Assembly: GCA_951804945.1 (NCBI GenBank)
Contig: OX638162.1
Span: 55,366,001-55,430,000 of the forward strand
Reading direction: 5' to 3'
DNA: 64,000 bases
From: Podarcis cretensis
Lineage: Eukaryota
Part shown: positions 1,679 to 63,303 of the stretch, piece after piece
How the letters are laid out: the number at the start of each line of letters is the position of its first letter
Position numbering within the stretch: the first letter of the stretch is position 1
The notes under the pieces: model-generated
Database searches by the model: none
What the model was told of the DNA's origin: nothing
The model's input: the letters and a program-made list of their open reading frames with translations, nothing else
Program-made: the position numbers and the translations under genes

Positions 1679-14592
<12,914 letters not shown>

Positions 14593-20747: not shown

Positions 20748-21899
20748 CGAAGAACCCAAGTTTTGCGGGGCGAACCAGAGCCAGGTGGTCCTGCAGGATG
20801 AGGCCGAGACCTTTGCTGCCTGAGGCGCAACAACAAAAGAGCTCCCTTCCAGAGCGAGGCTGCCCATTATGGCGGCCCTCAAGGCAGAAAATCCTGCAAG
20901 TGGAAATAAAACCACAGTAACAATGCATTATTAAGCTAAAGGTGATGGAGTCTCCTTTATTGGAGGTTTTTCAGCAAAGGTTGGGTGCCCACCTGGCAGG
21001 GATGATTTTGCTGCGATCCCTGCATGGCATTGGCAGGAGGTTGGACTAGATGAACCTCAGGAGTCCTTTCGACGGAATAACTAACGATTAGCACCTTTTC
21101 CTGCCTCGTGAAAAACCAGCCGCCACGTTGCTTCACTTTGCCGCAGGGCTGGCCTTGGTAACCTGCCTGGTGCTGCAGAATTCAATGGCTGCAATTCTGG
21201 AGACAATAAATGCGGTGGGAACATGGAGAAGAGAAGCTGGGAGCTACTCTGGGGGGACCAGCTCCCTAAAACGGAGAGCGGCATTCCCCAAAAGTCACTG
21301 AGAGACTTTCACCAGTTCTTCCCTCACATGTCACTTCTCAGTCTTCCCTCAGCAGTTTCCCAAAATGGCGATTGGAAGGAATCAGCTGTTTCTTGAAAAA
21401 GAAACAATGAATTGGCTTTAAAAACCTTTTACTGGAGAATATTGATTCAGCCATCTAACCATTCAGAAACTCTGAAGCAAGATGGGAAGAAGCCGCTAGG
21501 TGTCTTTATCACCTGGGGCACTTGGTCTCTGCCCAGCGGCCATTTTGTTTTTGGCCCAACTCTTCCCGACTCGCCAGCTGCGCTCGAGTTTCTCCCGCTG
21601 CGGATGTGATCTGCCCTGACACTCTTCAGTGCTGCAGCTTAGCTGGGTTTTCTTTCCAACGTCTTCGGATGGTGCTCTTGGGAGTCAAAGAGCGAGGCGT
21701 TCCATTTCGCAAAAAGGTAAATTGGGAGCATTACGGGTGCAGATCTGTGTGGGAACCCTTTGCTAAAGTCACCCTGGGTGTAAATAACTCTCTGACTACT
21801 CCTTGATCAATCAAGCTATATAGAAATTCCTTGGAGAAGTTTTGGTGGAAATGACAAGCTAACAAATGCTTTTTCAAAACAATAAAGTTCATGATACGT

Positions 21900-23900
21900 C
21901 AGGGAGAGACGGGGTCTTCCTGAGGGTGGCCCCCCTTGCCTTTCTCCCGCCATCTAATTTTCCCTCACGAGAAGCCGCGGGGGGGAGGGGCGCTGAGGCG
22001 AGGGAGGGAGGAGACCAAAGGCGGGAAACTTGGCCGCACAAGACAAGCGTGCGCCTGCGCGCCATGTCGCGGGCGCTTGCGCGGTGGGCAGCGCGGCTTC
22101 TGGTCACGGATTCTTCGCCGCCGCCGCCGCCGCCGCGCGCCCCGCTGGGGTCTCTCCTGTGCGCGCGCCCGCGAGTCCCCGCCCCCCTCGGCCACGGCTT
22201 CCCCGCCTCCCTCCCTCCCGAGCGCGCCTGCGCCGAGCCCCTCAGTGACAGCCGCCTCCGCCCTCGCCCTGCTGCTTCTTCTTCTTCTTCTTCTGCTTCC
22301 CCTTCCCCTTGAGGGCGGCCGAGCCGGCGCCGCGGCCTCCTGTGAGGCGCCTGCAGGGAGGCGGGCGATGCGTCCGAGCGGCCCGCCGTGAGGGAGGCGC
22401 GGCCCTGGCGCAGCGCCATGCGGCGGGGCCCGGAGCGGCCTGGCGGGAGCCCCAGCAGCGCGGTCCTCGGCGGCACCCAGACGCCCGGCAGCGGAGGCGG
22501 CGCGGGCGGCGGAGGAGGAGGAGGAGGAGACGGAGGCGGCCCGCGCTGAGAGCCGCTGCCTAGGGAGAAGGGAGCGCTCGGAGGGCCGCGGCCATGGCCT
22601 CCTCGTCGGCCTCGCCGCCCTCGGGCTCCTCGGCGCACCAGCAGCTCCTGCAGCAGCAGCAGCCTCAGCCTCAGCCTCAGCGGCGCCGGCGGAGCACCGA
22701 GGTGAGCTGCGACTCGAGCGGCAGCGGCGGCGGCGGCAGCGTCACGGTGAGGATCTGCGCCCGGAGCCCCCCGGGGGGGGCGGCCAAGGCCAAGGCCAGC
22801 ATCTCCTCCTCCAGCGGCAGCAGCAGCTCGGGAGACGCGGCGGCAGCGGCGGCGGCCAGGAAGGCCCAGGCGGCGGCGGCGTCGGGCGTCGGGAGAGGCG
22901 TCCGGGGCAAGAAGCGGAGAGAGAAGGGCGGCGGCGGGGGCGGGGGCGCCTTCGGGCTGGGCCTGGGCCTGGGCCTGGGCCTGGGCTCCCGGCGGCGCTC
23001 GACGCGGCTCCCGCAGCTCTTCGAGCGCGCCTCGGCGCAGTGGTGGAACCCCACGTTCGACTCGAGCAACCTGGAGGAGGCCTGCCGGGAGCGCTGCTTC
23101 CCGCAGACGCGGCGCCGCTTCCGCTACGCGCTCTCCTACCTGGGCGCGGCGGGGCTGCTGTGGGGCGCCTACTTCGCGCTGCGGCTGGGGCCCCCCGCCG
23201 AAGGAGGGCGGCGGCGGGGGCGGTGGCGGCAGGCCCCCTTCGTGGCGCCCGCGCTGGCCTTCCTGGCCGCCTGCCTCGCCTTCTTCGCCTTCACCTTCAC
23301 GCGCGCCTACGGGCGCCACCCGGCGCGCACCTCGCTGGCCCTCGTGCTGCTCGTCTTCGCCATCACGCTGGCGCCGCAGCTGCAGGCGCTGGGACCCCCG
23401 GCGGCGGGCCCGGACGAGTGGGGGGGTCCGCCGTCGGGGCCCTGCCTGTCGCAGGTGGGTAGCTTCTCCATGTGCATCGAGGTGCTGCTGCTGCTCTACA
23501 CCGTCATGCACCTGCCCCTCTACCTGAGCTTCTTGCTGGGCCTCTCCTACTCGGTCCTCTTCGAGACTTTCGGCTACTACTTCCGCCAGGAGAGCTGCTT
23601 CTCGCCCTTTGGGGAGCGCCTCCTGGCCTGGGACCTGCTCAGCAAAGCCCTGCTGCACGTGTGCATCCACGCCACCGGCATCCACCTCTTCATCATGTCC
23701 GAAGTCCGGTCCAGAAGCACCTTCCTGAAAGTGGGGCAGTCCATCATGCACGGCAAAGACCTGGAGGTGGAAAAGGCCCTCAAGGAGAGGATGATCCATT
23801 CCGTCATGCCCAGGATTATTGCCGACGACCTGATGAAGCAGGGGGACGACGAAAGCGAGAACTCCGTGAAGCGCCACTCCACCTCCAGCCCCAAAAACAA
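21900..23900 (+). promoter_or_regulatory. CpG island / ADCY9 promoter overlapping the first coding exon
   Basis: Very high GC and CpG density, GC boxes, NRF1-like tgcgcctgcgc (about 22050), (GCC)n and (GGA)n runs. Confidence 0.85.
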
Positions 23901-24487
23901 AAAGAAAAAGCCTTCTATACAGAAAAACCCCATCATATTCCGTCCTTTTAAAATGCAGCAGATAGAACAAGTCAGTATTTTGTTTGCGGATATTGTGGGC
24001 TTCACAAAAATGAGTGCCAACAAATCTGCGCATGCTCTGGTGGGACTCTTGAACGATCTCTTTGGTCGCTTTGATCGCCTGTGCGAGGACACAAAATGTG
24101 AGAAGATAAGCACTTTGGGGGACTGTTACTACTGTGTGGCAGGGTGCCCTGAGCCCCGAGAGGACCATGCTTATTGCTGCATCGAGATGGGGCTGGGCAT
24201 GATTAAAGCCATTGAGCAGTTTTGTCAGGAAAAGAAAGAGATGGTGAACATGAGGGTTGGTGTTCACACTGGGACGGTCCTGTGTGGCATTCTGGGGATG
24301 AGAAGGTTCAAGTTCGATGTGTGGTCCAATGACGTCAACTTGGCCAACCTTATGGAGCAACTGGGCGTGGCAGGAAAGGTCCATATTTCAGAAGCTACTG
24401 CAAAATACTTAGATGACCGCTATGAAATGGAGGATGGAAAGGTGACTGAGCGTGTTGGTCAGAGTGTGGTTGTAGACCAGCTTAAAG
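22594..24487 (+). CDS. ADCY9: ADCY9 first coding exon (N-terminus, TM1-6, C1a)
   Basis: gccATGG Kozak; donor AAAG|gtatac. Confidence 0.95.
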
Positions 24488-27400
24488 GTATACATATATA
24501 TATATATACGTGTGTGTGTCTAAAATGAACTGGTATACTTCAATACTTTCCTCCCATAGCTTCTTATGCTTGTTGTGCTGACATGGGCAAGTCTGGACAC
24601 ATCAAGTACAACATCTGAGATTCAGAGTTTTAGTTTTGAGGTTGTCCTTGCTGATTCTTCAAGGAATGAAAGATAAGGTATTTGATGTCATATGCTTGGC
24701 GCTTGCAACGCTTTCTGATTTTAAAACTGATTATTTTAAAGAGCAGTTTTAATGTTGTATTTTAATCGTCTGCCAGATATTTTATAGTTCATATACTTTC
24801 ATATAGTCTGTACTTTGGGTTTCAAGTGATTCATAGGCTTCTAGAAAAAAATACGACGTTCAGAAAAGAACTTTGTCTTCATGCTGAAAAGCAGACTGCA
24901 GACACCTCGTATTAAGGCAGATTTGCTTTTTGGTTTCTCCAGAAAAGTACCGCTATTTGGTGAGTTGTAATGGTTAGAACTTGACTTATAAAGTACAAAC
25001 CTATTTTGTTGAAGCTACAAATAGATTTGAGGCACCCAGTTACAAATCTGTTCTTTAGAGAACTTGTGGCAGTTTGACAAATACTTTAGGGAAAAGGCAT
25101 ATACTTTAATGAATTTCAAATAGAAGTCAGAACTTAAAAGAATATGTGTTAGATGCTCCTCCAAAAACAGTCTAATAATGTTTTGTTTCAGGTACTTTGT
25201 ACTGTGTTTATCAGTCTGAAGAACAGATGAAAGAGCTGAATGTGATCCAAAATGAAGTATTTGATACTGTTTTAATTAATAGTCAGTTTTAGAAACCGTA
25301 GGCAAGAGCAGAGTGCACTGGAAGGGAGACAGCTAAGTGTGAGTAACAGATGGGGCATGGAGCATAAAATGACATAAAATATGCAAAGCTAAAGCTTCCT
25401 CAAGACAGCTTGGAAAATGTCTCCATCTTTCCTCCTCTTGAGTTTTCTTAGCATGGTGAAATTTAAAAGGCAGAAAGTTTAAATGTAGTAATGGACTCAG
25501 CCTTCCTTCCTTGACAGCAGATGAAGGGTACCAGTAATTGTTATCTGTATAAATTGTTTTGAATTTCTAACTGTCATTTGACCTCGACCAAGTCAGCTGC
25601 TCTTAGGGCAGCCTGATTTTTGAAGAAAGTCTGTGCTGTTTATTCTGTAGCTCCCAGAAGTGTACAAGATATGCTGCACCCTAGGACACCAAGGCTAATT
25701 TATATTTGTTTATTATATAGCTACTTCTTTATAACATTTATAGTCTGTGTTTCCAGTACAGAATACTCCTAGATCAGTAGTTGCAAATACAGTATTGTAG
25801 TGAAATCGCTCTCTCTCTCTCTTTTTTAAAGAAAAAGGGTTTCTGGCTCTTCCCGATGTGGTAGAAAGCCTTTGATGGGAAAGACTACCACAAAGCGCCT
25901 ACTTGCTGTTCTAGCAGTACACTTAAGCATTTAACAAAGATAAGACATAATTAGAAGATTTTCTTATGTCTATCCTGCAGAGGAGCATTGTGCTGTGTAA
26001 AGAGAAGCCTTTGTTTCCTGCAGCAACACACTTAACTGAATGGATGTTTAACTTGCATACACTGGATAAATTCAGTTAAAAACCTGATTTTATGGGTAGT
26101 TCTAAATTGGGTTAAGCTTTGTATAGTGTTATATTGAAAATATAATAAACATATGCAGGTAATTAATGTGGTTATGCCACTCTCATGGCTTTTATTTAGA
26201 TACAGCTCAGTTTAGTGAAAGAGGGATTAAAGTATGCAGGAATGAGCTTTGAATACTGTTAGTATACTAGATGTACTAGATGCAGGAGTCTTTGTTGCTG
26301 CTGTTAACTATCATAGGTTCCCCTCTAGAAAATGAATTCAACGGGACTTCTGTTTAAGATGTGCATAGGGTTGCAGCCTTGGAAACGTTGAAGGGGTCTT
26401 ACCTTGAGTGGTGGTGGGTCAGCTTTGTGTCCTGAAGGACTTCTGTGTGTACACAAGCCATTCTGCTTACTGCTAAATGTTTTTGACACCATGTTTGCTG
26501 TAGGAAGATAATCTGCAGGCCATTAGGCTGTACCTCATTGCTAAACTGGTGGGGAGGGGGGCAGAGTCCTGCTAGCATTCCGCTAGTCGAGAAAAGTCTT
26601 ACAATTATTCAGATGCTGCAGTGCAGTAGTCCTTGGTGCAGGATTCCCACTCTTCATAACATGTAAAGTGTGTGTGTGTGTGTTGTTGTTGTTTTTAAGC
26701 AAACATTCACACTTGCCAATGAAATCAAGTGCTACTGCGTGGGACAGCAATGCCTTCAGTATTCAAAAATTGTCAAATACTGCGGCCCTGTATTGTATAA
26801 GCCTATTCTTGCCTTTCTTTTTATTGTGAGGGATTGGGAAGGCAGGAAAAGGGAAGCAAAAGTCTGTTAAGAGCAGTTTATGAAATGTCTTTTTGTTGCC
26901 AGAGGGTGGGCCTGACTGTTCCCAAGAGGAGAAGTGAGCCATGGGAATATCTGGCTCGCTGGCAGTAGTAGCTGGCTGCTGTGGTTTGCCTAGTCATAGT
27001 GGAGTGCACATTTGAGAGAGGGGTTCTGCAAACAAGTGGGGAGGAGGGGTAGTAGTGGAAGAATGGTTTCAGCTCTGTTAACTGTAATTTTCCTGTAGGT
27101 TTGAAAACATACCTGATTTCTGGTTTGAAAGTGAAGGAGCCCCCCTGCAGCTGCTCACAGATGCTGCTTCCAGGTCTAGAAGCAGGAGACAGAAGCAAGT
27201 TACAGGGAACCTCATCAGCAGAGAATGTTGGCAACTTAGCAAAAGGTTTCAGACAGTTGGAAAAAAACAAGGTTTGTCAAATGTATTCTTCAAACTTCTA
27301 AGGGTTTTTAATCAGAAACTTGTTTGAGAAGCTTTCGTTGGGGACATTAAATAGTCACTTGGGTGGTTGGAGTAGAACTAGGAACACTGAATCCTTGAAG

Positions 27401-36400: not shown

Positions 36401-39400
36401 TTTTGTTACACTATCACTGGTTCTGGTGAATAGTCCCCTCACAGGGCCTTTTGAAGACCCCAAAGCTGCAGCTGCCCCCTGCATTCAGCACTGCAATAAG
36501 TTGCTGTTGAGAGTGTGGGATATAAGATACTGTCCGAAGGCAACTTAGAGTGGCCTCCCGGAAGGAGAGCTCCTAGCAATGCAGTCAGAGCTGAGGAATG
36601 CACACAGCTGAAGAATAAAAAGGCAGCTGGCTGCATTTTCCAAGCTGAGAACAAGAAAGCAGGTAAGGGTGACAGTTTGGGGCAAAGCGGAGCCTAGAGG
36701 ATGGAGTGTGGAGGTGCAGTAAGAGGATGGGAGGAAAGGAAGGAAGGAAAGCAAGAAGGTTGAGGACAGGGACAGAGGGGAAGCTTGCTGGGAAGCTTCA
36801 CTCCAGAGCGGGAGGAACAGAAATAGTACGCTTTATTTCCTTGGGTTAAAAAAACATCCTTTTTACCCTATTATACTGAAGAAAGGCCAAAGGAGGGTAA
36901 AAAAGAGATTTTTTTAACCCAAGGAAATAAAGCATACAAATGGACGGAATCAGTGATGAGTTATTTATATGTAAAAAAAATTGTACTGTTTGTTTTATAT
37001 CTGTGTTTTTTAAAAAATATTATATTGCTCTTTGTAAATGGCTTGGAGGTCTTCAGTTGAACAGGTGGTATATAGTCAAAACAAAATAAAAAAATTCCTT
37101 CCAGTAGGACCTTAAAGACCAACTAAGTTAGTTCTAGGTATGAGCTTTCATGTGCATGCACACTTCTTCAGATACACTGAAACAGAAGTCACCAGACCCT
37201 TCTAAATAGTGGGAAGGTGGGGAGGGGTATTACTCAGAAGGGTGGTGGGAATGGGTGATTGGCAGATAGCTGTGATGAGCCTGTTGACGACTCTTAACGA
37301 CTGCAATAGGTCTTACAGGAAAAAGCAAGGGGTGAGAAGGTGAAAAATGGCTTTGTCATGTATAATGAGATAAGAATCCAATGTCTTTGTTAAGACCAGG
37401 TCTCTCCATGGTTTTAAGTTTGGTAATAAGTTGCAATTCAGCAGCTTCTCTTTCCAGTCTATTTCTGAAATTCCTTTGTAATACAACAGCTACTTTGAGA
37501 TCTTGTATAGAATGTCCTGGGAGATTGAAGTGTTCTCCTACTGGTTTCTCTGTCTTGTGATTCCTGATGTCAGATTTATGTCCGTTTATCCTTTGGCGTA
37601 AGGTTTGGCCTGTTTGTCCAATATAGAGAGCTGAAGGACACTGTTGGCATTTGATGGCATACACAATGTTAGACGATGAGCAATTAAATAGTCCCGAGAT
37701 GGTATGTGTGATGTTGTTGGGGCCAGTAATGGTGTTGTCCGGGTGTATGTGGCAGCAAAGTTGGCATCTGGGTTTATTGCAGGCTCTGGTGCCAGTGTCC
37801 GTGTTAAGTCTGGTAGTAGTATTATTGTGGGTTAGGAGTTGTTTAAGATTGGGTGGCTGTCTGTAGGCAATGAAAGGTCTTCCTCCCAGAGCTTGAGAAA
37901 GAGAACTGTCATTGTCCAGGAGAGGTTGTAGATCTCTGATGATGCGTTGTACTGTTTTAACTTGGGAGCTGTATGTGATGACTAGAGGTGTTCTGTTATT
38001 TTCTTTTTTGGGTCTGTCTTGCAGCAAGTTCTCTCTGGGTATCAGTCTGGCTCTGTTGATCTGTTGTCTAACTTCATCTGCTGGGTATTTTAGTTCTAAA
38101 AAGGTTTGCTGTAGATCTCTTAGGTGAGAGTCTCTGTCTGTAGAATTGGAACAGATGCGGCTGTAACGTAGTGCCTGGCTATATACAATGGACTGTTTGG
38201 TATGTTTGGGATGGTAGCTAGAGGCATGTAGATATGTTTGTCGGTCAGTTGGTTTACGGTATAAGGTGGTGTCTATGCGCCCATCCTGTATTTTTATAGT
38301 AGTGTCCAAAAAATGTATTTCTTGCATAGATTGATTCATTGTTAGGTTGATTGTGGGGTGAAAATCATTGAATTTCTGGTGGAAGGTGTCCAGGGTCTGT
38401 TGACCATGTGTCCAGATGATAAAAATATCGTCAATGTATCACAGGTACAAGAGAGGTTTGAGTGGGTAGGAGTTTAGGCACAGATCAGCGGCACAACAAT
38501 GGGCACCCGCATGGCCCCACAGTATGCCAACATCTTCATGGCAGATTTAGAACAACGTTTCCTACAATCAACCTAACAATGAATCAATCTATGCAAGAAA
38601 TACATTTTTTGGACACTACTATAAAAATACAGGATGGGCGCATAGACACCACCTTATACCGTAAAGGGGGCACCCACATATTGGTGCACTGTCTCATTCT
38701 GTTCTTTTTGCCTTTATCTGAAACAGGTTATGAGGAACACCCCCGTGAAGACCTTCGCCAGTGCTACCTTTAGTTCACTTCTGGATGTTTTGCTGTCCAC
38801 AACAGTCTTCCTCATCCTCTCTGTCACCTGCTTCCTGAAGCATGGGATGGCTGCAACTCCTCCCCCACCTGCAGCAGTGGTTGTGGTGGTCATTGCCATC
38901 CTGCTAGAGGTGCTGTCCCTTATCGTCTCCATTAGGTAAATGAGGCAGACTCTGGATCACTCTCACAGGGCGCGTAGGATAGCAGCAGAGGCAGGGCCTG
39001 CTTCTTGGATTTGAAATGGGAATAGCTAAGAATGGGACAGAGAGTTCTGTGAGGGCCTTCGTAGCTCTGTTGTATGGAAAACAGACTCCTCCTTTCACCA
39101 CTTAGAGGTGAGCCAGGACTCTCAGATTTGTACTAGTGGTCCACCCTAGGCCAGGCAAAACCCACTTGAGTCACTTTGGACATAATTAAACGTGTAAGGC
39201 ACCCTAAAGGTGAGAACATGACAGGAAAGGGAAGAGAGCAGGATCCAGCAAAATGGCGGGGCTGCTGCTTCTAGTCTGATTAAGTGAGGAAATCAAGCAT
39301 GCCATTTCCTTGCGTAGAGGCCCGCTCTGAGTGAAGCGGCAGCTATACAGAGAGACTTGCAAAACCATTCCCCTCCGCTCCTTTGCCTTTCTAGGCTCAG

Positions 39401-42400: not shown

Positions 42401-45400
42401 TGTTTGGATGGGGTTTTTTTTATCCATTTCCACAGTCACACAATCAGTCAATCAATCAGTAGCTGAACTGGGGTCCATACAGTCATAAAAACAAATTAAC
42501 CAAAAAAGCCTCAAAGACAAAAAATGTAAAATAAATAGCAAAAACAAAAGCGCCAAACTTAATCCATTTCGGAAGTCCATTTAACTTTCAAAATGTTCAG
42601 AAACCAAGGCACAGCTTCTGATTGGTGCAGGTGCCCCGGGAACAGTAGCCGACAGCCGCATCAGACGTTCGGCTTCTGAAAAATGTTCGAGAACCAGAAC
42701 ACTTCCGGGTTTTCAGCGTTTGAGAACCAAGGCATTTAGGTACCAAGGCGTTTGAGAACCAAGGTACCACTGTATGCTATAAAACCTTGCTTGTGTATTG
42801 ATTAGAAACACTAAAAAAGGTCAACTGTACACTGAACTCCATGTCCAAAGAGTTAGACATCAGCAGCCTGCTTCAGAATTTAGCTCAGGAACAACCAAAT
42901 TGACTGTAAAAAAATACCAAATAAACTAGAGAAATATAACAGTTGCCTGGATTTTAAAAAAAGGAAAAATGCAGTGTGTGCCTACATCGGTGCTAGTTTT
43001 GAAGCCTGGTATATGTGGTGTCACAGAAGCGAAAGTGAGGAGAAGAAACGCTCACCATGTGTCTGTACCCTAAATAATGGCAGGAACAGAAGTAGCTGTT
43101 TTCAGACTTAAGCAAATGGTTTTTCATTTAAGGGCTTGATCAACATCAAACTTCATTATTTTCATCACCTCATGATGAATGTCTGAAGCCACCAAGCTAT
43201 ATATAGGTAAAACTCCAGTGGAATCCCTGGGACTAAGAAATGGAAATTCTAAATGTAGATTAAGCTCACTAAATCCTGCAATTATTACCTCTCCTATTCA
43301 TTTCTGTTGATGTTTTGCTATATTTGGATTTCAGCTCCACAGAAATCTCCCATCTTCCGTTAGAACAGAACTATAGGTAAGAATTGATACCTAGTTCTCA
43401 GTTTTTTATGTTTTTCCTTTGCTTGCTTGATCGTTCATATTTCTGAAATGTAGAGAGTGGTGCAGTTAGATTAGTCAGTCATAGACATATTAATCTGCAG
43501 ATAACTGTGACAGATGAAGGTTAAACAGACTCTCACATAAAAACTTGGGATGAGTCTCTTAAGTCTGACAGAATACTTTATTTGACATCTGAGGACCAAA
43601 CTGGACATGATGTGATTTACCCAAGTAGTGACTAATTGTGACACTATCCATGTATGTGTGTGAGAGAGTAGGGGGGGGAGGTGGTAGGGAGAGGGAAAGT
43701 AAATAGCAGTTGAACAAAATCTGGATTGGAACAAAACTGGTACATCATGACATAAGTGGTGAACCTGCAAATGAATTTTGGGATTTTTAGAGGGTTCAGA
43801 AAATTGTGAAACATAATATACTATCAGGACCCAATTGGCCCTCTTAAATCTGTATACAGTGGTACCTCAGTTTTCGAACGTCTCTGTTGACAAAAGTTTC
43901 AGTTTTCGAACGCCGTAAACCCGGAAGTAAATGCTTCATTTTTGAACCCGCCTTGGAAGTCAAACATGAAATGCGGCTTCTGTATTAAGTTTTCCATTTT
44001 GAGGCTTCTGTATTGAGTTTACCGTTTTGGAACTCGAACGGTCTTCCAGAATGGATTACGTTCGAAAACTAAGGTACCACTGTACCAGCTAAAATAAATA
44101 TTTGAAGAATAAGGATTCGATTGTTTGCCTTTTGATGGCAGCACAGAATTTTATTTGGTTTGCTCATTTTGTATTTTATTTGCATATATTTAGTTAAATG
44201 ATTTGTATCTGAGTGATAAAACTTCAAAAGAGTTTTAGGTTTTATTCAACTATGTTTTACTTGAAATATACCCATTGAAATGAATAAAACAATAAAACAT
44301 TTTTGAAAAAGAAACTAGGCAGTGTGGGTGGGTGGGTGGTCTGGATCTTTGCTCACCACAGCCATCCTGATCTGAATCTCCACTCCCCCCACTCCAAAAT
44401 AAAGAGAGTCCCATTGTGTGAATGACACAATGTCTAGTTTGGTCCTGCGCATATGAAGTTGTCATAATTGTCTCTGTTGCCATGGGGGACTAGAAAATCG
44501 TATTTTAAAATAGAATAACATTTTAAAATAGAGTAACGTTGTGTGCTTGTGATTAGAATATAGGAATATAAGAATAGAGAAAACATACAAATGCTTTTTT
44601 CTTTTCTTTTTTACATTTACTCTGTGTATGTGCGTGTGTCTATATTTTCTTTAAAAAATTAACTCCAGTTCCATAAGGAATCCATGCTACCAATCAACCT
44701 TGGAAGACTTCAGGCGGCCAGCAGACCTTATTGGCCATGAAGTGATTCTGGGCTTCTTCCTTCTTCTCCTCCTGGTTTGGTTCTTAAACCGTGAGTTTGA
44801 AGTGAGCTACCGTCTGCATTACCATGGAGACGTGGAAGCCGACCTTCACCGCACCAAGATCCAGAGCATGAGGGACCAGGCGGACTGGCTGCTGCGGAAT
44901 ATCATTCCATACCACGTGGCGGAGCAGCTGAAAGTCTCACAGAGCTACTCCAAAAATCATGACAGTGGTGGCGTGATCTTTGCCAGCATCGTGAACTTCA
45001 GTGAGTTCTACGAGGAGAACTACGAAGGAGGCAAGGAGTGCTACCGAGTCCTGAACGAGCTGATTGGGGACTTTGACGAGCTGCTGAGCAAGCCTGACTA
45101 CAGCAACATCGAGAAGATCAAAACCATCGGGGCCACGTATATGGCCGCCTCTGGCCTGAACACGTCCCAGTGCCAAGACAGCAACAGCCCGCACGGCCAC
45201 TTGCAAACCCTCTTCGAATTTGCCAAAGAAATGATGCGAGTGGTTGATGACTTTAACAACAACATGCTGTGGTTCAATTTCAAACTACGGATTGGCTTCA
45301 ACCACGGCCCCTTGACTGCCGGGGTCATTGGCACCACCAAGCTCCTCTATGACATTTGGGGTGACACTGTGAACATCGCCAGCAGGATGGACACGACCGG

Positions 45401-45860
45401 AGTGGAGTGTCGCATCCAGGTGAGTGAAGAGAGCTACCGCATCCTGAACAAAATGGGGTATGACTTTGATTACAGGGGGACGGTGAATGTGAAGGGCAAA
45501 GGGCAGATGAAGACCTTCCTGTACCCCAAGTGCATGGACAACGGCATCGTCCCCCACCACCAGTTATCTATATCTCCAGACATCCGTGTTCAAGTGGATG
45601 GCAGCATTGGGCGGTCTCCGACGGACGAGATCACCAACCTGGTGCCTTCTGTACAGAATTTGGACAAGACGCCCCACGTCTCGGACCATAATTTGGAGCT
45701 CAAGGGCGGGCTCCCCTCTTTCAAGAATCTCCCAAAAGAGACAGGGAAGCCAGAGGATGGGCGTAGGTTTGGTAAGTCTGTTGAGAAAAACGACTGCAAA
45801 GAAGCAGGTCCCGGTGAGACCAGTGAGCTGACTAAGCTGAATAACTCGCGGAGCTTATGA
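22594..45860 (+). CDS. ADCY9: Adenylate cyclase type 9, complete CDS (1414 aa with one 42-nt micro-exon)
   Basis: Exons 22594-24487, 27099-27271, 31895-31999, 32907-33124, 35416-35518, 38727-38935, 39457-39616, 40459-40607, micro-exon(s) 41028-41069 / 42145(or 42151)-42186 / 43335-43376, 44669-45860. All GT-AG; sum 4245 nt in frame. C1a (SILFADIVGFT, KISTLGDCYYC) and C2a (EKIKTIGATYMA, YDIWGDTVNIASRM) cyclase motifs plus the ADCY9-type STEVSCDSSG and C-terminal tail. Confidence 0.97.
27099..27271 (+). CDS. ADCY9: ADCY9 exon (LKTYLISG...)
   Basis: cctgtag|GT ... AAG|gtttgt; 173 nt. Confidence 0.92.
28170..28338. mobile_element. Tc1/mariner-type MITE
   Basis: TIR ccgtattttt / aaaaatacgg with TA TSD. 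Confidence 0.8.
31895..31999 (+). CDS. ADCY9: ADCY9 exon (TCPSC...DEHKNSTK)
   Basis: ttccag|ACA ... AAG|gtaaca; 105 nt. Confidence 0.92.
32907..33124 (+). CDS. ADCY9: ADCY9 exon (QNGLLSPPQEEKL...VIKED)
   Basis: aatcag|GGC ... AG|gtgaga; 218 nt. Confidence 0.93.
34669..34822. repeat. 154-bp direct duplication, second copy 35829-35982
   Basis: Two mismatches by eye; the copies flank ADCY9 exon 35416-35518. Confidence 0.9.
34828..35077 (+). mobile_element. tRNA-derived SINE
   Basis: A box tggtgtagtggtt, B box gggttcgcatc, core gtgaccttgggccagtcac, (TCT)n tail. Confidence 0.85.
35416..35518 (+). CDS. ADCY9: ADCY9 exon (LMKDYFFKPPIN...YQEE)
   Basis: cctctag|C ... GAG|gtgtgt; 103 nt. Confidence 0.93.
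35907..36195 (-). mobile_element. CR1-like LINE 3' fragment
   Basis: catagaatcatagag terminus; minus frame RTRTHGFKLQGRRFRLNIRKNFLTV. Confidence 0.75.
37075..38665 (-). mobile_element. Penelope-like retroelement (RT C-terminus, Cys-rich linker, GIY-YIG endonuclease), 5'-truncated with 5' inversion
   Basis: ORF 37356-38339: FLDTTI..TTLYRKPTD, CNKPRCQLC, VYAIKCQQC..LYIGQT..LRQRINGH. The upstream YL*YIDD motif carries a stop. 38479-38665 is inverted RT sequence (GTTMGTRMAPQYANIFM). The 3' terminal repeat contains a hammerhead motif. Confidence 0.92.
37138..37175 (-). ncRNA. Minimal type I hammerhead ribozyme in the Penelope-like terminal repeat
   Basis: Minus strand gtat CTGAAGA a gtgtgcatgcacat GAAA gc TC atac; one C>T at the base of stem II. 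Confidence 0.65.
38727..38935 (+). CDS. ADCY9: ADCY9 exon (TM7-8)
   Basis: aaacag|GTT ... AG|gtaaat; 209 nt. Confidence 0.93.
39457..39616 (+). CDS. ADCY9: ADCY9 exon (MVFFLEDVMACTKR...)
   Basis: tttcag|A ... TAT|gtaagt; 160 nt. Confidence 0.93.
40459..40607 (+). CDS. ADCY9: ADCY9 exon (YCNFCQLSSWMRSSLAT...LCPD)
   Basis: ttgcag|TAT ... AG|gtgagc; 149 nt. Confidence 0.93.
41028..41069 (+). CDS. ADCY9: ADCY9 42-nt micro-exon copy a (SVEESYIESVKNFS)
   Basis: Long pyrimidine tract, gtttcag|CTC ... TTTAG|gtaagc; phase 2-2; ends NFS like the mammalian 42-nt exon as recalled. Confidence 0.85.
42145..42186 (+). CDS. ADCY9: ADCY9 micro-exon copy b ([FS]SMEIFNSTQNIS; 42 nt, or 36 nt from 42151)
   Basis: catttcag|tttcag|CTCC ... 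ATCAG|gtaatc; open and frame-preserving from either acceptor. Confidence 0.65.
42319..42772. mobile_element. Tigger/pogo-like MITE
   Basis: 23-bp TIR cagtggtaccttggttctcaaac, TA TSD. Confidence 0.88.
43335..43376 (+). CDS. ADCY9: ADCY9 42-nt micro-exon copy c (STEISHLPLEQNYS)
   Basis: atttcag|CTCC ... TATAG|gtaaga; phase 2-2, no stop. Confidence 0.7.
   Translation, partial: LHRNLPSSVRTEL
43857..44082. mobile_element. Tigger/pogo-like MITE
   Basis: TIR cagtggtacct.agttttcgaacg, TA TSD. Confidence 0.85.
44669..45860 (+). CDS. ADCY9: ADCY9 last coding exon (TM12, C2a, C2b)
   Basis: actccag|TTCC; ORF 44700-45860; stop TGA 45858-45860. Confidence 0.96.
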
Positions 45861-57039: not shown

Positions 57040-57265
57040 CCCTGGAATTGGAGAAGTAGTTGACACCCAGGGTCGGCCTCCTTATCTGTGTCGTCCCCGT
57101 CCCGCCCCCCCCCCAAGGCCTGCTGCTGCTGCTCCTCCCTGAGCGGTTGTGCCTGTTGCTGCCTGGGTGGGGTCCTTCTGCCTGCTGTTGGGTGCAGATA
57201 GGGAAGGAGGCAGCGGCCCCCCCTTGCCACGTGCCTTTCCCCATTGCTCTGGTCATCGTGATCTC
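57040..57265 (-). promoter_or_regulatory. Candidate erythroid 3' enhancer of the divergent alpha globin
   Basis: GATA sites at 57082-57087 and 57196-57201; inverted homology to 63090-63263. Confidence 0.6.
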
Positions 57266-57945
57266 GGGGGACGAGCCTGAGGCGCCCCCCTGCCTGCGCG
57301 GAGACCTCTCCCTGCGCCCTTCGCGGCCTGCGGATGTTTGGGGGGGGGGCTGGCCTCCCCATCATTGAGTGGAAGCAAAGAACACCTAGGACGGGGGTGG
57401 TTTGAGCAGCCTCCCTTTCATGGGCGTAGCCAAGAGGGGGCAGCTCCCCTAAATCAATAGAAATCGACATAAATGCATAGCTAACGTAGGTTCTGCCCCC
57501 CTTAACAAAAGGCCTACCCCCCCCCCAACAAAAATGCCATTCCCCCTTTACTGCAGTTCCGGCATTGCAGCGGGCTGGGCTTTATGACCTTTGGAGGGCC
57601 CTCCAGTTCTGCGATTCTATGCTGTTCTCTCTCAGCACAGGAGTGCAGAGGGGAAAGCCGCAGACTTGCCGGTCCCTCCACTTCCCCGAGGTACGAAAAG
57701 GCTTGATGGTGAATAAACTCATTTATTACCCAGACTTAACCATCCGGTCCCGGGACAATGTGACATTCCCTACGGACAACCTCGAGGGGAGCGCCGTCGA
57801 GGGCTCCTCCGAAGCCCGTCCAGCCCCCCCCCCCAGCCGCCCCCCAGAGAGAGGTGAGGGCTCAGCGCTGCAGTTTAAATAGCCCAAAGCTTTATTAGGA
57901 GGGAGAAGACGGGGAGGGCGCCCGGGCGAGGCCGTCCTGCCCTGC

Positions 57946-58591
57946 CTAGCGGTGGCGGGAGGTCAGGACGCGGGCGACGCTGCCCAGGAATTTGTCCACG
58001 GAAAGGAGGAGCGCCGGGTCGAGGGAGCCGCGGCTGTGGGCACCGACGGTCACCAGGATGCAGTGGTTAAGGCACTGTGGGAGAGAGGAGAGCGCCAGCG
58101 TTAGAGAGAGAGAGCAGGACCCTGGGCCGCCCGACGGGGAGGGCAGCGGGAGGCCGGGGCAGCCTCGGGGAGCGCGACTCACCTCGAAGCTGCTGGGCGA
58201 CACCCGCAGCTGGAAGGCGTGCAGCTCGCTGAGATGGCCGAGGGCGCCGGGCAGGTCGTCCAGGTTCTCGACGGCGCAGCTGAGCGCGTCCACCACCTTC
58301 TTGCCCAGCGCCTTCAGCTGGGCCGAGTCCGGAGAGAGGTCGAGGTGATGGAAGTAGGTCTTGGTGGTGGGGTGCGCCGCCATCAGCCTGCGGGACCAGG
58401 ACAGGATCAGGCCAGCGGCCTCGCCCTCGGGGTTCCAGCCTCCACCCACGGACGGCAGACCTGGGGAGGGTCCCGGAGCCGGCGGGGAGGACTTACCTGG
58501 TGAGCACCTCGACGCCCACGGCTTCGGCGTGTCTGCTCACGGGGACCCAGATGGCCCTCACGCGCTGCTTGTCTTCCTCGGTCAGCCCCAT
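57946..58591 (-). CDS. Divergent alpha-type globin (alphaA-like paralogue, His E7->Leu), 142 aa; exons 58591-58497, 58387-58183, 58074-57946
   Basis: Canonical 95/205/129-nt alpha-globin exons, GT-AG introns. [70 protein letters not shown] box 58638-58643; AATAAA 57891-57896. Confidence 0.93.
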
Positions 58592-59044
58592 CTTGGCAGT
58601 GGGGCGTCCTGGGCGCCGCGCGGGCAGCCAGGCAGCCTTTAATCGGCGCTGCGCAGGGGGCCTCCGACCCGGAGGTCCCGCCCTTCACAGCTGCGTCTGG
58701 GCGCCGCAAGGAGAGGCCTTGCGTGGGCACCACTAGCTGGCTGAAGGCCAGCAACGCGCAAGAGGCCCGGTGGGGACGTGCGTGGCGCCTGGCTCAGTTT
58801 CTTTCCCTGTTTTCGAGCGCTTAGAACTCAGCCCCCCCCCCTCCACCCCCAGGTCGGTGGCGCTCCAGGCGGCTAAGGCTCAAAGGGAGATGCATCAGAC
58901 GGCCAACTCAGGTGGACTCACAGACCACCGTCGAGGCCACTTGGAGCCCGCGGGCGCCTGCTTCTCTCCAATGGGTTTTGGGGACCTTCTCCGGAGGGTA
59001 GTCGCTTACGGGGGCTCTTGGGTATGCCTCTGCCGCCCCCGTCA

Positions 59045-59335: not shown

Positions 59336-60440
59336 AAGAGGGGTCCCCAGACCCCAGCGTAACCCACCCAGAGGGTCCGTGGAACAACTGTTCAGCACGT
59401 CCCGTTTTTGGGGGGTCGTGGTCTCCCGCAAGAGCACAGCGCCCCAAATGCACGCTCCCGCCCCTGCCCCCCCCCCGCTGCTTCCCTCCACTGATACCGT
59501 AAAGCTTCGCAGGGCGCCATCCCCGAGTTACCGCCGCCCTCTCCGAGTCTCTTCCGCAGGTGCCTTCAGCCAGGCTCCCACGACCAAGCACCTTGGATCA
59601 CTCTTCCGTGGAGAAGGGGACAAATATCCTGCAAGGGGTCCCCTTCTTTTAAATGCTGCGTTAGTTTAACCCAGGAATTCTGCTGCCACTCACTGTTCTG
59701 CATTCTCACGGACGCTTTTTGCACCCACTGTGTTGCCCATAGGCATGCACGGAAAGAGTGTGCGTGTGGATAGGAATGCAGGGGCATGCAACCCACCCTG
59801 GACGCCTGTCATAACCGCTGCTGTGTTGGTGAAGGGCGTGGGGGACACACGTTGGTTTAAGTCCGCGGCAAAGGCCTCAACTTCCAGGAAAGTCTTGAGG
59901 CCTCGGCTCCTCGGCACGTGGTGACTCTTCATTTGAGCTCTTCCTTGCCCGCCTTGCTCCGTAGATTATTTCCGGGAAACCCCGCCCCCCTTCCTTAAAC
60001 CAGCTTTTTATTTCAAGTATAAAACTGGAATGATTAGAGGCTTCGTGTTTTGTTTTTGTTTTTTTTTTTCAATTTTTTTATTGATTTTCCAAATTTATAA
60101 CAAATAGAAAAAGAACATCAAATATACAAACAAAGAAACATTTATCTTAACTGTAATAATTCCACTTTTGTTAACCTTGTTAGGTGACTTCCTCAAATCC
60201 CTCTGGCTGAGTTTCCATATAAATTATTGTAGCAGTTTTCCAAAACTATTTGCACATAAAATTTACTTAGTCAAATTAACATCTATCTTCCTTTTCATTT
60301 AAACTTTAAACATATTATTCTATAACATCACATATTTAAATCCTAGGCCTATCTTATATTCACAAGTAATTTTATTTAAATTGAAATATACATTTATTAA
60401 GAAACCAGAAGCCTTTCTACTTGGAATAATAGGTCTAGAA

Positions 60441-60589
60441 TAGGTCTGTGTATCTGAAGAAGTGTGCATGCACACGAAAGCTCATACCTAGAACTAACTT
60501 AGTTGGTCTTTAAGGTGCTACTGGAAGGAATTTTTTTTCTTTTATTTTGTTTTGACTATGGCAGACCAACACGGCTACCTATCTGTAAC
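60441..60589 (+). mobile_element. Solo Penelope-like terminal repeat nested in the L1
   Basis: Near-identical to the reverse complement of 37075-37177; flanked by taggtctagaa at 60430-60440 and 60590-60600. Confidence 0.85.
60450..60487 (+). ncRNA. Minimal type I hammerhead ribozyme
   Basis: gtat CTGAAGA a gtgtgcatgcacac GAAA gc TC atac: catalytic boxes, palindromic stem II, stem I gtat/atac, AGCT palindrome in place of stem III. Confidence 0.72.
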
Positions 60590-61723: not shown

Positions 61724-62356
61724 ATGGTGTTGACCGACGACGACAAGAGCCACGTGAAGCATGTTTGGAGCGAGATCCAGTCCCACGCCGGGGACATCGG
61801 CGCCGAGGCCATCACCAGGTAAGTCCGCCCCGTCGGGCAGGGACCCTCTCCCGGGGACGAGGCCGCGGGCCGGGTGGGACTCGGACCCTCGTCTTCCTGC
61901 TCCTCTCCTCCTCCTCTTCCCGCAGGATGTTCGCAGCGCACCCCACCACTAAGACCTACTTCGCGCACATGGACGTGAGCCCCGGCTCTGCGGACATCAA
62001 GGCGCACGGCAAGAAGGTCGCGGCCGCCATCGGCGAGGCCGTGGCGCACATCGACAACATCGCCGGCGCCCTCGACAAGCTCAGCGACCTGCACGCCCAG
62101 AAGATGCGCGTGGACCCCGTCAACTTCGCGGTGAGTCTCTCTCTCCTCCCCGTCGGGGCTCCGGGGCGGGTGGGATCCCTGCTTCGCTCCGTCCGGGGCC
62201 CCGTCTAACGCTCCCCCTCTCCCGCAGCTGCTGAGCCACTGCTTCCTGGTGGCCATCGCCGCCCACCACCAGGGGCTCCTCAAGGCCAGCACCCTCGTCT
62301 CCATGGACAAGTTCCTGGGCCGCGTCGGCACCGTGCTGACCTGCAAGTACCGCTAG
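61724..62356 (+). CDS. HBA: Hemoglobin alpha-A-like chain, 142 aa; exons 61724-61818, 61926-62130, 62228-62356
   Basis: 95/205/129-nt exons. [54 protein letters not shown]; His58, His87, Phe43, Tyr140 and Arg141 intact; AATAAA 62425-62430. Confidence 0.96.
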
Positions 62357-63089
62357 GCCCCACGAAGCCCAAGCCCGCCGCAGAGGAGCCGCCTCGACGC
62401 CGCCCTGCGACCCCCAAAGCCCACAATAAACCTGCTCTTGACTCTCCCTGATCTCTCGCGTCTTCTTGGGCTGAACTGGGGGCGGGAGGGAAGAAGGTCG
62501 AGGGGGACCCCGGGGGCCTGGACGGCTCTGGCGAGGGAGACCCCGTCCCGCGGGATAGCCCCTAACTTGGCGCTCCTTGAACCCGGGGCAGTTGGACCGA
62601 GTCGCCTGCTAGGTGGGGGCCCTGAAAGAGCGCAGGCACGCGTGGGGCGCAGAGTCAGCCCCAGAAGGGCTCCGTCTCCTTGGGGGTCTTCCTTCCAGGT
62701 CCCTTCGGGGGACTTGTGGAGTGGGGCTCCCCAGGCCTTTGCGCCCCTGGCTGGACTGACTGGGATGAAGCAGACGACCTATTCGGAAGGGCCGGTCTCG
62801 GGGTTGTGCTCGCAGAAGGGCCCCGCCCGGCTCCGTCCAGCCCGAAAGCCCCGCGAGCCACAGCTGCCAGCCCGTGTAGGCAATAGGGCCCGGGTTGGAT
62901 GCAATAGAAGGCAGCTTCCTAGGATCCTGCGCTCAAGGGCAGAGGCAGCCCCCTCCCCACAGCCAAGGCCGGGGGGGCAGTGCCAGGGTCCCCTCCACAC
63001 CCGCACTGAGAGGGCACGGGAAGAGGCCCCCAAGCAGGAGCCCTGCCTGGGAGGGGGCGACTCGGGCTCTGGAACCACCGCCAGTTCCT

Positions 63090-63303
63090 GAGATCAGAGG
63101 ACCCACCAGAGCGATGGGAAGGGCGCATGGCAAGGGGGGGCGCCCTCCCTCCCCCGCTATCTGCTCACAGCAGCCAGGAGAAGGAGGCACCCCAGGGCGG
63201 GTCGGGAGGTCTGGGGAGCAGATAAGCAGACACACAGGGTGCCAACATCTACCCCAACTCCAGGAGGCCTGCGGGGGGGGGGGCGGTTAGGCCTCTGCTA
63301 TCT
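63090..63303 (+). promoter_or_regulatory. Candidate erythroid 3' enhancer of alphaA globin
   Basis: GATA sites at 63157-63162, 63220-63225 and 63298-63303, about 0.75 kb after the stop; homologous to 57040-57265. Confidence 0.62.

Follow-up and report, generated by a model that had tools for sequence, protein, structure and literature searches.

A 64,000-nt stretch of the Podarcis cretensis genome (hereafter the window; positions 55,366,001 to 55,430,000 of contig OX638162.1, forward strand, assembly GCA_951804945.1) carries on its minus strand an intact alpha-globin gene in which the distal histidine, at position E7, is replaced by leucine. In haemoglobin (Hb) this histidine forms a hydrogen bond with bound O2, of which leucine at the same position is incapable. 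We describe here the integrity of this candidate gene, its conservation, its origin and its pattern of constraint. On balance, and with modest confidence, we favour the view that it is a paralogue of alphaA selectively maintained in lacertid lizards, whose product would bind heme around an apolar pocket and pair with beta chains in a non-allosteric haemoglobin. Judging from its residues, the protein probably still binds heme and is unlikely to act as a normal oxygen-carrying haemoglobin chain.

An intact alpha-globin gene with an apolar distal pocket

The three exons of the candidate (Table 1), joined by their coordinates, form a coding sequence of 429 nt, and the gene has the layout of vertebrate alpha-globin genes, with exons of 95, 205 and 129 nt, introns at codons 31/32 and 99/100 and GT-AG borders; polypyrimidine tracts are present in both introns. 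A sequence-only reading of the window had already described a 142-residue open reading frame (ORF) with these exon sizes and splice sites, a TATA-like box and a polyadenylation signal, all of which are found on the minus strand. The sequence of exon 2 alone matches the Pfam Globin family PF00042 (E = 3.7e-15, 56.9 bits for a cutoff of 22). The GC content at third codon positions (GC3) is 0.93, and the CpG observed/expected ratio is 0.73 to 0.77 across the gene versus 0.43 in the flank. Alignments, trees and statistics were based on the joined-exon sequence; searches and folding used the exons, the stop-free stretch 57949-58386 of the minus strand or the public orthologue P0001.

The predicted protein and the product of the neighbouring alphaA gene are identical at 72 of 142 positions, Met included, which corresponds to the 71 of 141 (about 50%) of the sequence-only reading. 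The substitutions listed in that reading (V1G, F33M, F46L, H58L, D94S, N97S and Y140H) are all present, and Phe43, Val62 and His87 are kept. The distal pocket is wholly apolar, with Leu at B10, Phe at CD1, Leu at E7 and Val at E11.

Conservation of Leu E7 among lacertids

Intact orthologues were found at the protein level in four other lacertids, Podarcis lilfordi, P. muralis, Lacerta agilis and Zootoca vivipara, and all of them have Leu E7, Ser94 and Ser97. The public models, annotated as 'alpha-A-like', are identical to the candidate at 137 (P. lilfordi), 125 (L. agilis) and 126 (Z. vivipara) of 142 positions. The public model of P. muralis (P0002, UniProt A0A670JGC8) is identical at 97 of 100 positions across exons 1 and 2; it then continues into intron 2 and terminates in the wrong frame, with the true exon 3 missing, a mis-splicing explained by the lack of in-frame stops in intron 2. 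The chromosomes bearing the orthologue in these four species are each about 53 Mb long. In an exhaustive HMMER scan of 1.84 billion representatives at 50% identity, the orthologues form a cluster of their own, beyond which the score falls from 279 to 156 bits at the next match, 56% identical. No disabling lesion (stop, frameshift, or loss of a splice site, start or stop codon) was seen in the candidate across the five lacertid species.

The E7 codon of P. cretensis (58308..58306) reads CTG, two changes away from the CAC of the neighbouring alphaA. The sequence-only reading had judged a base-call error improbable on these grounds, and such an error is now excluded because the four other lacertid assemblies also encode Leu. 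The broader possibility of a false Leu E7 arising from sequencing, assembly or a mis-called exon model is negligible, since Leu occupies the same codon position in five independent assemblies, the splice sites are canonical and the mis-splicing of the P. muralis model lies only downstream of exon 2.

His87 and Phe43, which serve in heme binding, are retained in all five lacertid sequences. Chains that transport O2 have a hydrogen-bonding residue at E7 (His, rarely Gln) and conserve the residues of the alpha1beta2 switch and joint (Tyr42, Arg92, Asp94, Asn97, Tyr140 and Arg141). All five lacertid orthologues have Leu58 instead, and only Tyr42 and Arg141 of the second set are retained throughout. 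Asp94 and Asn97, together with Val96, are replaced in every one of them, Arg92 has become Gln in Lacerta and Zootoca, and Tyr140 has become His in Podarcis and Lacerta. The last of these changes was thus correctly read from the P. cretensis gene but is not clade-wide, as Zootoca has Tyr140. Among 111 further alphaA-type chains retrieved by profile search from squamates, turtles, birds, one crocodile and mammals, His occupies E7 in 110 and Gln in the remaining one, and both Asp94 and Asn97 are invariant (111/111).

Class and origin of the gene

In a maximum-likelihood (ML) tree of 60 alpha-type chains over 142 alignment columns, the candidate clade is supported at 100/100 and stands on a single very long stem branch of 0.54 changes per site. 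This clade is nested among the alphaA chains of non-gecko squamates (a 27-row clade with support 97/84 and a 32-row clade with 94/84); bird alphaD groups with mu, and pi with zeta, each pair in a clade of its own. On these sequences the candidate is assigned to the squamate alphaA group and not to alphaD/mu or alphaE/zeta/pi. The possibility that it is alphaD or a remnant alphaE is ruled out by the tree and by three further points: its calculated mass of 15.3 kDa, or 15,319 Da without Met, and its Ser131, where published lacertid alphaD chains have 15.97 to 15.99 kDa and Val or Glu at 131 (Pu et al. 2024), and the published alphaD primers of Eremias, which have no site in the 64-kb window at up to three mismatches.

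With lacertid and squamate alphaA the candidate has in common the 95/205/129-nt exons, a similar ATA-box promoter layout and a GATA-containing 3' element; the two proteins share Phe CD1, Val E11, the proximal His and the majority of heme and alpha1beta1 contacts. AlphaA differs by its E7 His and by the presence of Asp94, Val96 and Asn97; its amino acid identity to the candidate is 51%, and its pI is 8.0, versus about 6.3 to 7.3 for the candidate.

The duplication is older than the split between Podarcis, Lacerta and Zootoca, for which a recent preprint quotes a calibration of about 37.5 Mya (10.1101/2025.06.04.657811, citing Garcia-Porta et al. 2019). The candidate and alphaA lie head-to-head, with start codons 3.1 kb apart, and tblastn with several globins detected no other globin gene in the window. 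The two gene bodies, aligned as mirror images, are 67% identical. Intron 1 retains an identity of 0.65 versus 0.50 for shuffled sequences, with 20 gap columns; the corresponding values are 0.57 versus 0.51 for intron 2 and 0.52 versus 0.47 for the 3' untranslated region (UTR), and the promoter is also near the shuffled baseline. Because introns, 3' UTR and promoter are this close to the baseline, the duplication must be old. Against such near-saturated non-coding DNA, the conservation of a 3' element in both copies is conspicuous. The two elements are 77% identical over 93 bp in mirror image (57162..57253 versus 63196..63105, blastn), have G-rich/CACCC-like stretches in common and appear, from their sequence, to stem from the duplication of an alphaA 3' enhancer. 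We propose that alphaA and the GATA-containing element downstream of it were copied by an old inverted duplication, which placed the copies head-to-head, and that a burst of change followed, then a stable derived state common to Podarcis, Lacerta and Zootoca.

A rival account of this origin, possible though rather unlikely in our view, holds that the standard alphaA of snakes, iguanians and amphisbaenians has its true orthologue in the candidate, that the lacertid/teiid neighbour is an older and different paralogue, and that the duplication far predates Lacertidae. In the tree, the 27-row clade unites the candidate with Rhineura, iguanians, snakes and Hemicordylus, and a separate clade (99/95) holds the neighbouring alphaA, Zootoca alpha-2 and Salvator. 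The candidate is also 59 to 64% identical to the alphaA chains of that 27-row clade, compared with the 51% to its neighbour, and near-saturated non-coding DNA between the paralogues fits an older duplication. However, this tree rests on only 142 columns and one very long branch, and approximately unbiased (AU) tests reject neither a duplication restricted to lacertids (p = 0.114) nor one within Lacertoidea (p = 0.109); the short spacer, the mirror-image arrangement and the matching 3' elements moreover suggest a local duplication.

Selective constraint or slow decay

Exon lengths are unchanged between the candidate and alphaA, against 20 to 25 gap columns in each intron alignment. In a neutral simulation restricted to substitutions, with indels left out, the start codon, the stop codon and an open frame were kept in 3.3% of cases at 0.3 substitutions per site and in 1.4% at 0.4. 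Of 39 positions with a conservation of 95% or more among 43 canonical alphaA chains, here called near-invariant, the candidate clade keeps 34; Phe33, His58, Asp85, Asp94 and Asn97 are changed in all of its members. Changes relative to the squamate majority affect 6 of 38 conserved sites versus 44 of 103 others (Fisher p = 0.003). When textbook contact lists are applied, the changes fall on 4 of 22 heme contacts, 3 of 17 alpha1beta1 contacts and 5 of 15 alpha1beta2 contacts, for 51 of 141 positions overall, and the replaced alpha1beta2 sites include residues that are invariant elsewhere. Podarcis and Zootoca differ at 16 residues of the candidate and at 11 of alphaA, so that the candidate changes only about 1.5 times faster than a working globin. 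The claim of the sequence-only reading that the gene is not a pseudogene is well supported by this sparing of conserved and near-invariant sites in a gene that is old yet intact in at least five lacertid species. Its proposal of a shift away from cooperative O2 transport fits the spared heme and alpha1beta1 contacts and the replaced E7 and alpha1beta2 residues.

Several observations weigh against selective maintenance of a functional chain. No function is known to have been demonstrated for a natural vertebrate Hb chain that has Leu at E7. Changes within the clade do not significantly avoid conserved sites (4/38 versus 18/103, p = 0.43) and, with Arg92->Gln and Tyr140->His among them, would fit a partial relaxation. 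The dN/dS ratio between the paralogues is 1.03 by NG86 and 0.85 by LWL85, at a GC3 of 0.93 to 0.97; it is uninformative on selection because of this extreme composition and because the synonymous divergence, about 0.4 to 0.5, lies far below the near-saturated divergence of non-coding DNA. Finally, a preprint on Iberolacerta finds one of the five alpha genes silent in adult pooled tissues and the alphaA class under weaker constraint than alphaD (10.1101/2025.06.04.657811); the silent gene could be the counterpart of the candidate.

The candidate could accordingly be pictured as an alphaA duplicate that lost its O2 role, like mammalian theta or mu, perhaps transcribed at a low level without yielding an important protein and drifting slowly towards a pseudogene with its ORF still open. 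We regard this as unlikely, although it deserves serious weight. The loss of E7 His, Asp94 and Asn97, the variation of Arg92 and Tyr140 within the clade, the faster change, the lack of significant avoidance of conserved sites and the Iberolacerta data all speak for it. Slow decay is, however, difficult to reconcile with exon lengths, splice sites, start and stop that are intact in five species amid saturated non-coding DNA, or with the small fraction of simulated frames (1.4 to 3.3%) that persist even without indels. Nor would it predict that heme and alpha1beta1 contacts are preferentially conserved, that positions 58, 94 and 97 show no variation in their derived residues, or that a CpG island and the 3' element are kept. 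Mammalian theta-globin (HBQ1) is likewise an alphaA-derived extra paralogue of the alpha cluster, with a long branch and without a known haemoglobin role; it differs in its independent mammalian origin, from within mammalian alpha in the ML tree, and the theta sequence that we examined has His E7.

Predicted structure and ligand behaviour

The AlphaFold model of the public orthologue is an all-helical globin (pLDDT 85, pTM 0.81) that is weaker only near residues 81-100, in the F helix and FG corner. Its top 50 matches in the Protein Data Bank (PDB) are all haemoglobin alpha-type chains (alpha or zeta). The best of them is human Hb alpha H58L (3QJB, TM 0.89, 54% identity), which outscores wild-type human alpha by sequence too. 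This engineered chain, whose sequence is the same in 3QJD, comes from a crystallisable haemoglobin and shows that Leu E7 does not stop an alpha chain from folding, binding heme and assembling. It carries this one laboratory mutation and leaves the alpha1beta2 interface intact, whereas the lizard gene is natural, has been fixed for at least about 37 My and is also changed at positions 94, 96, 97, 33 and 46. Among the PDB matches are also alpha D94G, N97A, Y140A/F and R92A, from a series titled T-to-T(High) quaternary transitions; these titles tie the positions concerned to quaternary control.

The retained fold and proximal histidine, most of the heme contacts and most of the alpha1beta1 surface make heme binding and pairing with beta the most likely behaviour of the predicted chain. 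As known from work on E7 mutants, loss of the E7 hydrogen bond results in weaker O2 retention, faster autoxidation and a higher relative preference for CO; a study by Birukou et al. in 2010, cited in PMC12504858, is reportedly an example of such work. As its Leu E7 is unable to make this bond, the lizard chain would be expected to hold O2 weakly, to autoxidise fast and to favour CO and NO, and the replaced alpha1beta2 switch residues would weaken or abolish cooperativity. In the quadruple mutant alpha(H58L/V62F) beta(H63L/V67F), which has Leu at E7, the iron-bound water is lost and more hemin dissociates early in unfolding (10.1101/726216).

We envisage the product as a minor or stage-specific alpha-like chain of erythroid cells, distinct from normal cooperative O2 carriers. 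The GATA-bearing 3' element and the alpha-type promoter layout suggest that expression is erythroid, rather than non-erythroid as the sequence-only reading had also allowed, and the retained CpG island is a further indirect sign. The other roles put forward in that reading, CO/NO scavenging or sensing, are conjectural.

An embryonic or juvenile chain that still carries O2, replaces the alphaE lost by squamates and owes a high affinity and low cooperativity to its altered alpha1beta2 contacts appears improbable. Weak allostery is typical of embryonic haemoglobins, but every embryonic chain known to us has a hydrogen-bonding residue at E7, and Leu there destabilises bound O2 and speeds autoxidation. 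Two reports would suit such a chain, namely that squamates are without alphaE (Hoffmann et al. 2018) and that one lacertid alpha gene is unseen in adult tissues (10.1101/2025.06.04.657811); the natural E7 variants reported in squamate alpha chains are, however, Gln, plus Arg in one species (PMC12504858).

Residues at E7 outside the lacertids

A 2025 GBE survey recorded Gln E7 for HBA1 in at least 10 species and for HBAD in 130, and Arg E7 for HBAD in Varanus niloticus; Gln E7 is treated there as functionally mild, and Leu E7 goes unmentioned (PMC12504858). Such squamate chains are natural departures from His, as the candidate is, but Gln can still form a hydrogen bond with O2. P0020 (Hemicordylus capensis, 181 aa) is a cordylid alphaA-type chain with Gln E7, and its N-terminal extension of 39 residues has the appearance of an annotation artefact.

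Two near-identical proteins of Eublepharis macularius, annotated as 'hemoglobin subunit alpha-like' (P0039 and P0189), resemble the candidate in being derived from squamate alphaA, in their Leu E7 and in their KALGK motif. They differ by Val at F8, which means that the proximal His is lost, by a length of 139 aa and by an identity to the candidate of 45%. In the ML tree they are attached to gecko alphaA (98/82) with a branch length of 1.44, and only two derived residues are uniquely shared between the gecko and lacertid Leu-E7 chains. The sequences suggest that the gecko genes arose independently of the lacertid ones; joining them to the lacertid clade costs 4.5 log-likelihood units and is not rejected (AU p = 0.288). 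We consider it quite unlikely that Leu-E7 alpha-like globins are an old squamate lineage common to geckos and lacertids and lost elsewhere, in which a red-cell heme protein pairing with beta would have given up O2 transport for NO, CO or redox chemistry. In that case selection would have kept, in nature, a vertebrate haemoglobin chain whose distal pocket is wholly apolar.

Other alpha-like predicted proteins among the representatives of the HMMER scan (P0092, P0037, P0081 and P0109) have an apolar residue at E7 (Leu, Ile, Pro or Phe), so that such states turn up here and there among the divergent alpha paralogues of public databases. Two snake models annotated as 'alpha-A-like', P0282 from Vipera latastei and P0246 from Erythrolamprus reginae, have Pro aligned at F8, and P0282 differs from the canonical residue at 7 near-invariant sites; both would be either divergent paralogues or faulty gene models.

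Neighbouring alphaA and genomic surroundings

The neighbouring gene groups with Zootoca 'alpha-2' (P0252) with support 100/98, and the alphaA reverse primer of Eremias (Pu et al. 2024) matches exactly at 62420-62441, in its 3' UTR. This identifies it as the alphaA of lacertid workers. An AT-rich block at 60000-60500 (GC 0.27, CpG observed/expected 0.22) occupies the middle of the 3.1-kb spacer between the divergent globin promoters, and four WGATAR sites occur in the spacer at 60142-60579.

Table 1. Coordinates of the candidate gene, its sequence signals and neighbouring features in the window
Feature	Position	Strand	Description
Candidate alpha-globin gene	58591..57946	-	Three exons, 142 codons plus stop, E7 = Leu
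Exon 1, coding part	58497..58591	-	95 nt; ATG at 58591..58589; codons 1-31 plus 2 nt; GTAAGT follows at 58496
Intron 1	58388..58496	-	109 nt; GT..AG
Exon 2	58183..58387	-	205 nt; carries CD1 Phe, E7 Leu, E11 Val, F8 His and the altered FG/G1-G4 stretch
Intron 2	58075..58182	-	108 nt; GT..AG; no in-frame stop
Exon 3, coding part	57946..58074	-	129 nt including TAG at 57948..57946
TATA-like box ATTAAAG	58637..58643	-	52 nt upstream of ATG; aligned to AATAAAAG in the neighbouring alphaA promoter
AATAAA polyadenylation signal	57891..57896	-	50 nt past the stop codon
E7 codon CTG (Leu58)	58306..58308	-	CAC (His) in the neighbouring alphaA
F8 codon CAC (proximal His87)	58219..58221	-	Kept
Codons 94-97, Ser-Pro-Ser-Ser	58189..58200	-	Asp-Pro-Val-Asn in other alpha chains; alpha1beta2 switch/joint region
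3' element of the candidate	57162..57253	-	About 0.7 kb downstream of the gene; WGATAR at 57196
Canonical alphaA gene	61724..62356	+	Exons 61724-61818, 61926-62130 and 62228-62356; E7 His
3' element of alphaA	63105..63196	+	About 0.7 kb downstream of alphaA; WGATAR at 63157
ADCY9	First large coding exon 22594-24525; last exon 44700-45860	+	Both exons match PF00211, a cyclase domain

ADCY9 converges on the 3' end of the candidate, and the globin pair lies about 12 kb past the 3' end of ADCY9. This setting differs from NPRL3...LUC7L, in which amniote alpha clusters are usually described. An ADCY9 intron contains a 327-aa ORF (37356-38336, minus strand) with a GIY-YIG endonuclease domain (PF01541, E = 8.4e-6), which probably belongs to a Penelope-like retroelement. 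Antisense to the GC-rich first exon of ADCY9 (GC 0.71) runs an 831-aa ORF that starts with ATG (21889-24384, minus strand); it matches no Pfam family, and base composition is its most likely cause. A run of N is present at 11999-12188.

Significance

Squamates have been described as having alphaD and alphaA only (Hoffmann et al. 2018), and lacertids as having alphaA plus alphaD (Pu et al. 2024). A 2025 preprint on Iberolacerta reported an alpha cluster of five genes that is conserved across Iberolacerta, Podarcis and Zootoca and of which four are expressed in adult pooled Iso-Seq; it classes alpha genes only as A or D and does not mention E7 (10.1101/2025.06.04.657811). Gene models of the candidate are already public, and in literature searches we found no published report of a lizard alpha chain with Leu E7 or of its conservation.

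The distal histidine is among the most conserved functional residues of vertebrate haemoglobin, and its natural replacements in alpha chains are nearly always Gln. With Leu E7 fixed across lacertid genera, the candidate offers a natural parallel to the alpha(H58L) laboratory mutant, and it extends the squamate repertoire beyond the usually quoted alphaD plus alphaA. Studies of selection or expression that pool genes as lacertid 'alphaA' should treat the Leu-E7 paralogue separately. If the protein is made, it would offer a test of how a vertebrate red cell fares with a heme chain of poor O2 binding and ready autoxidation.

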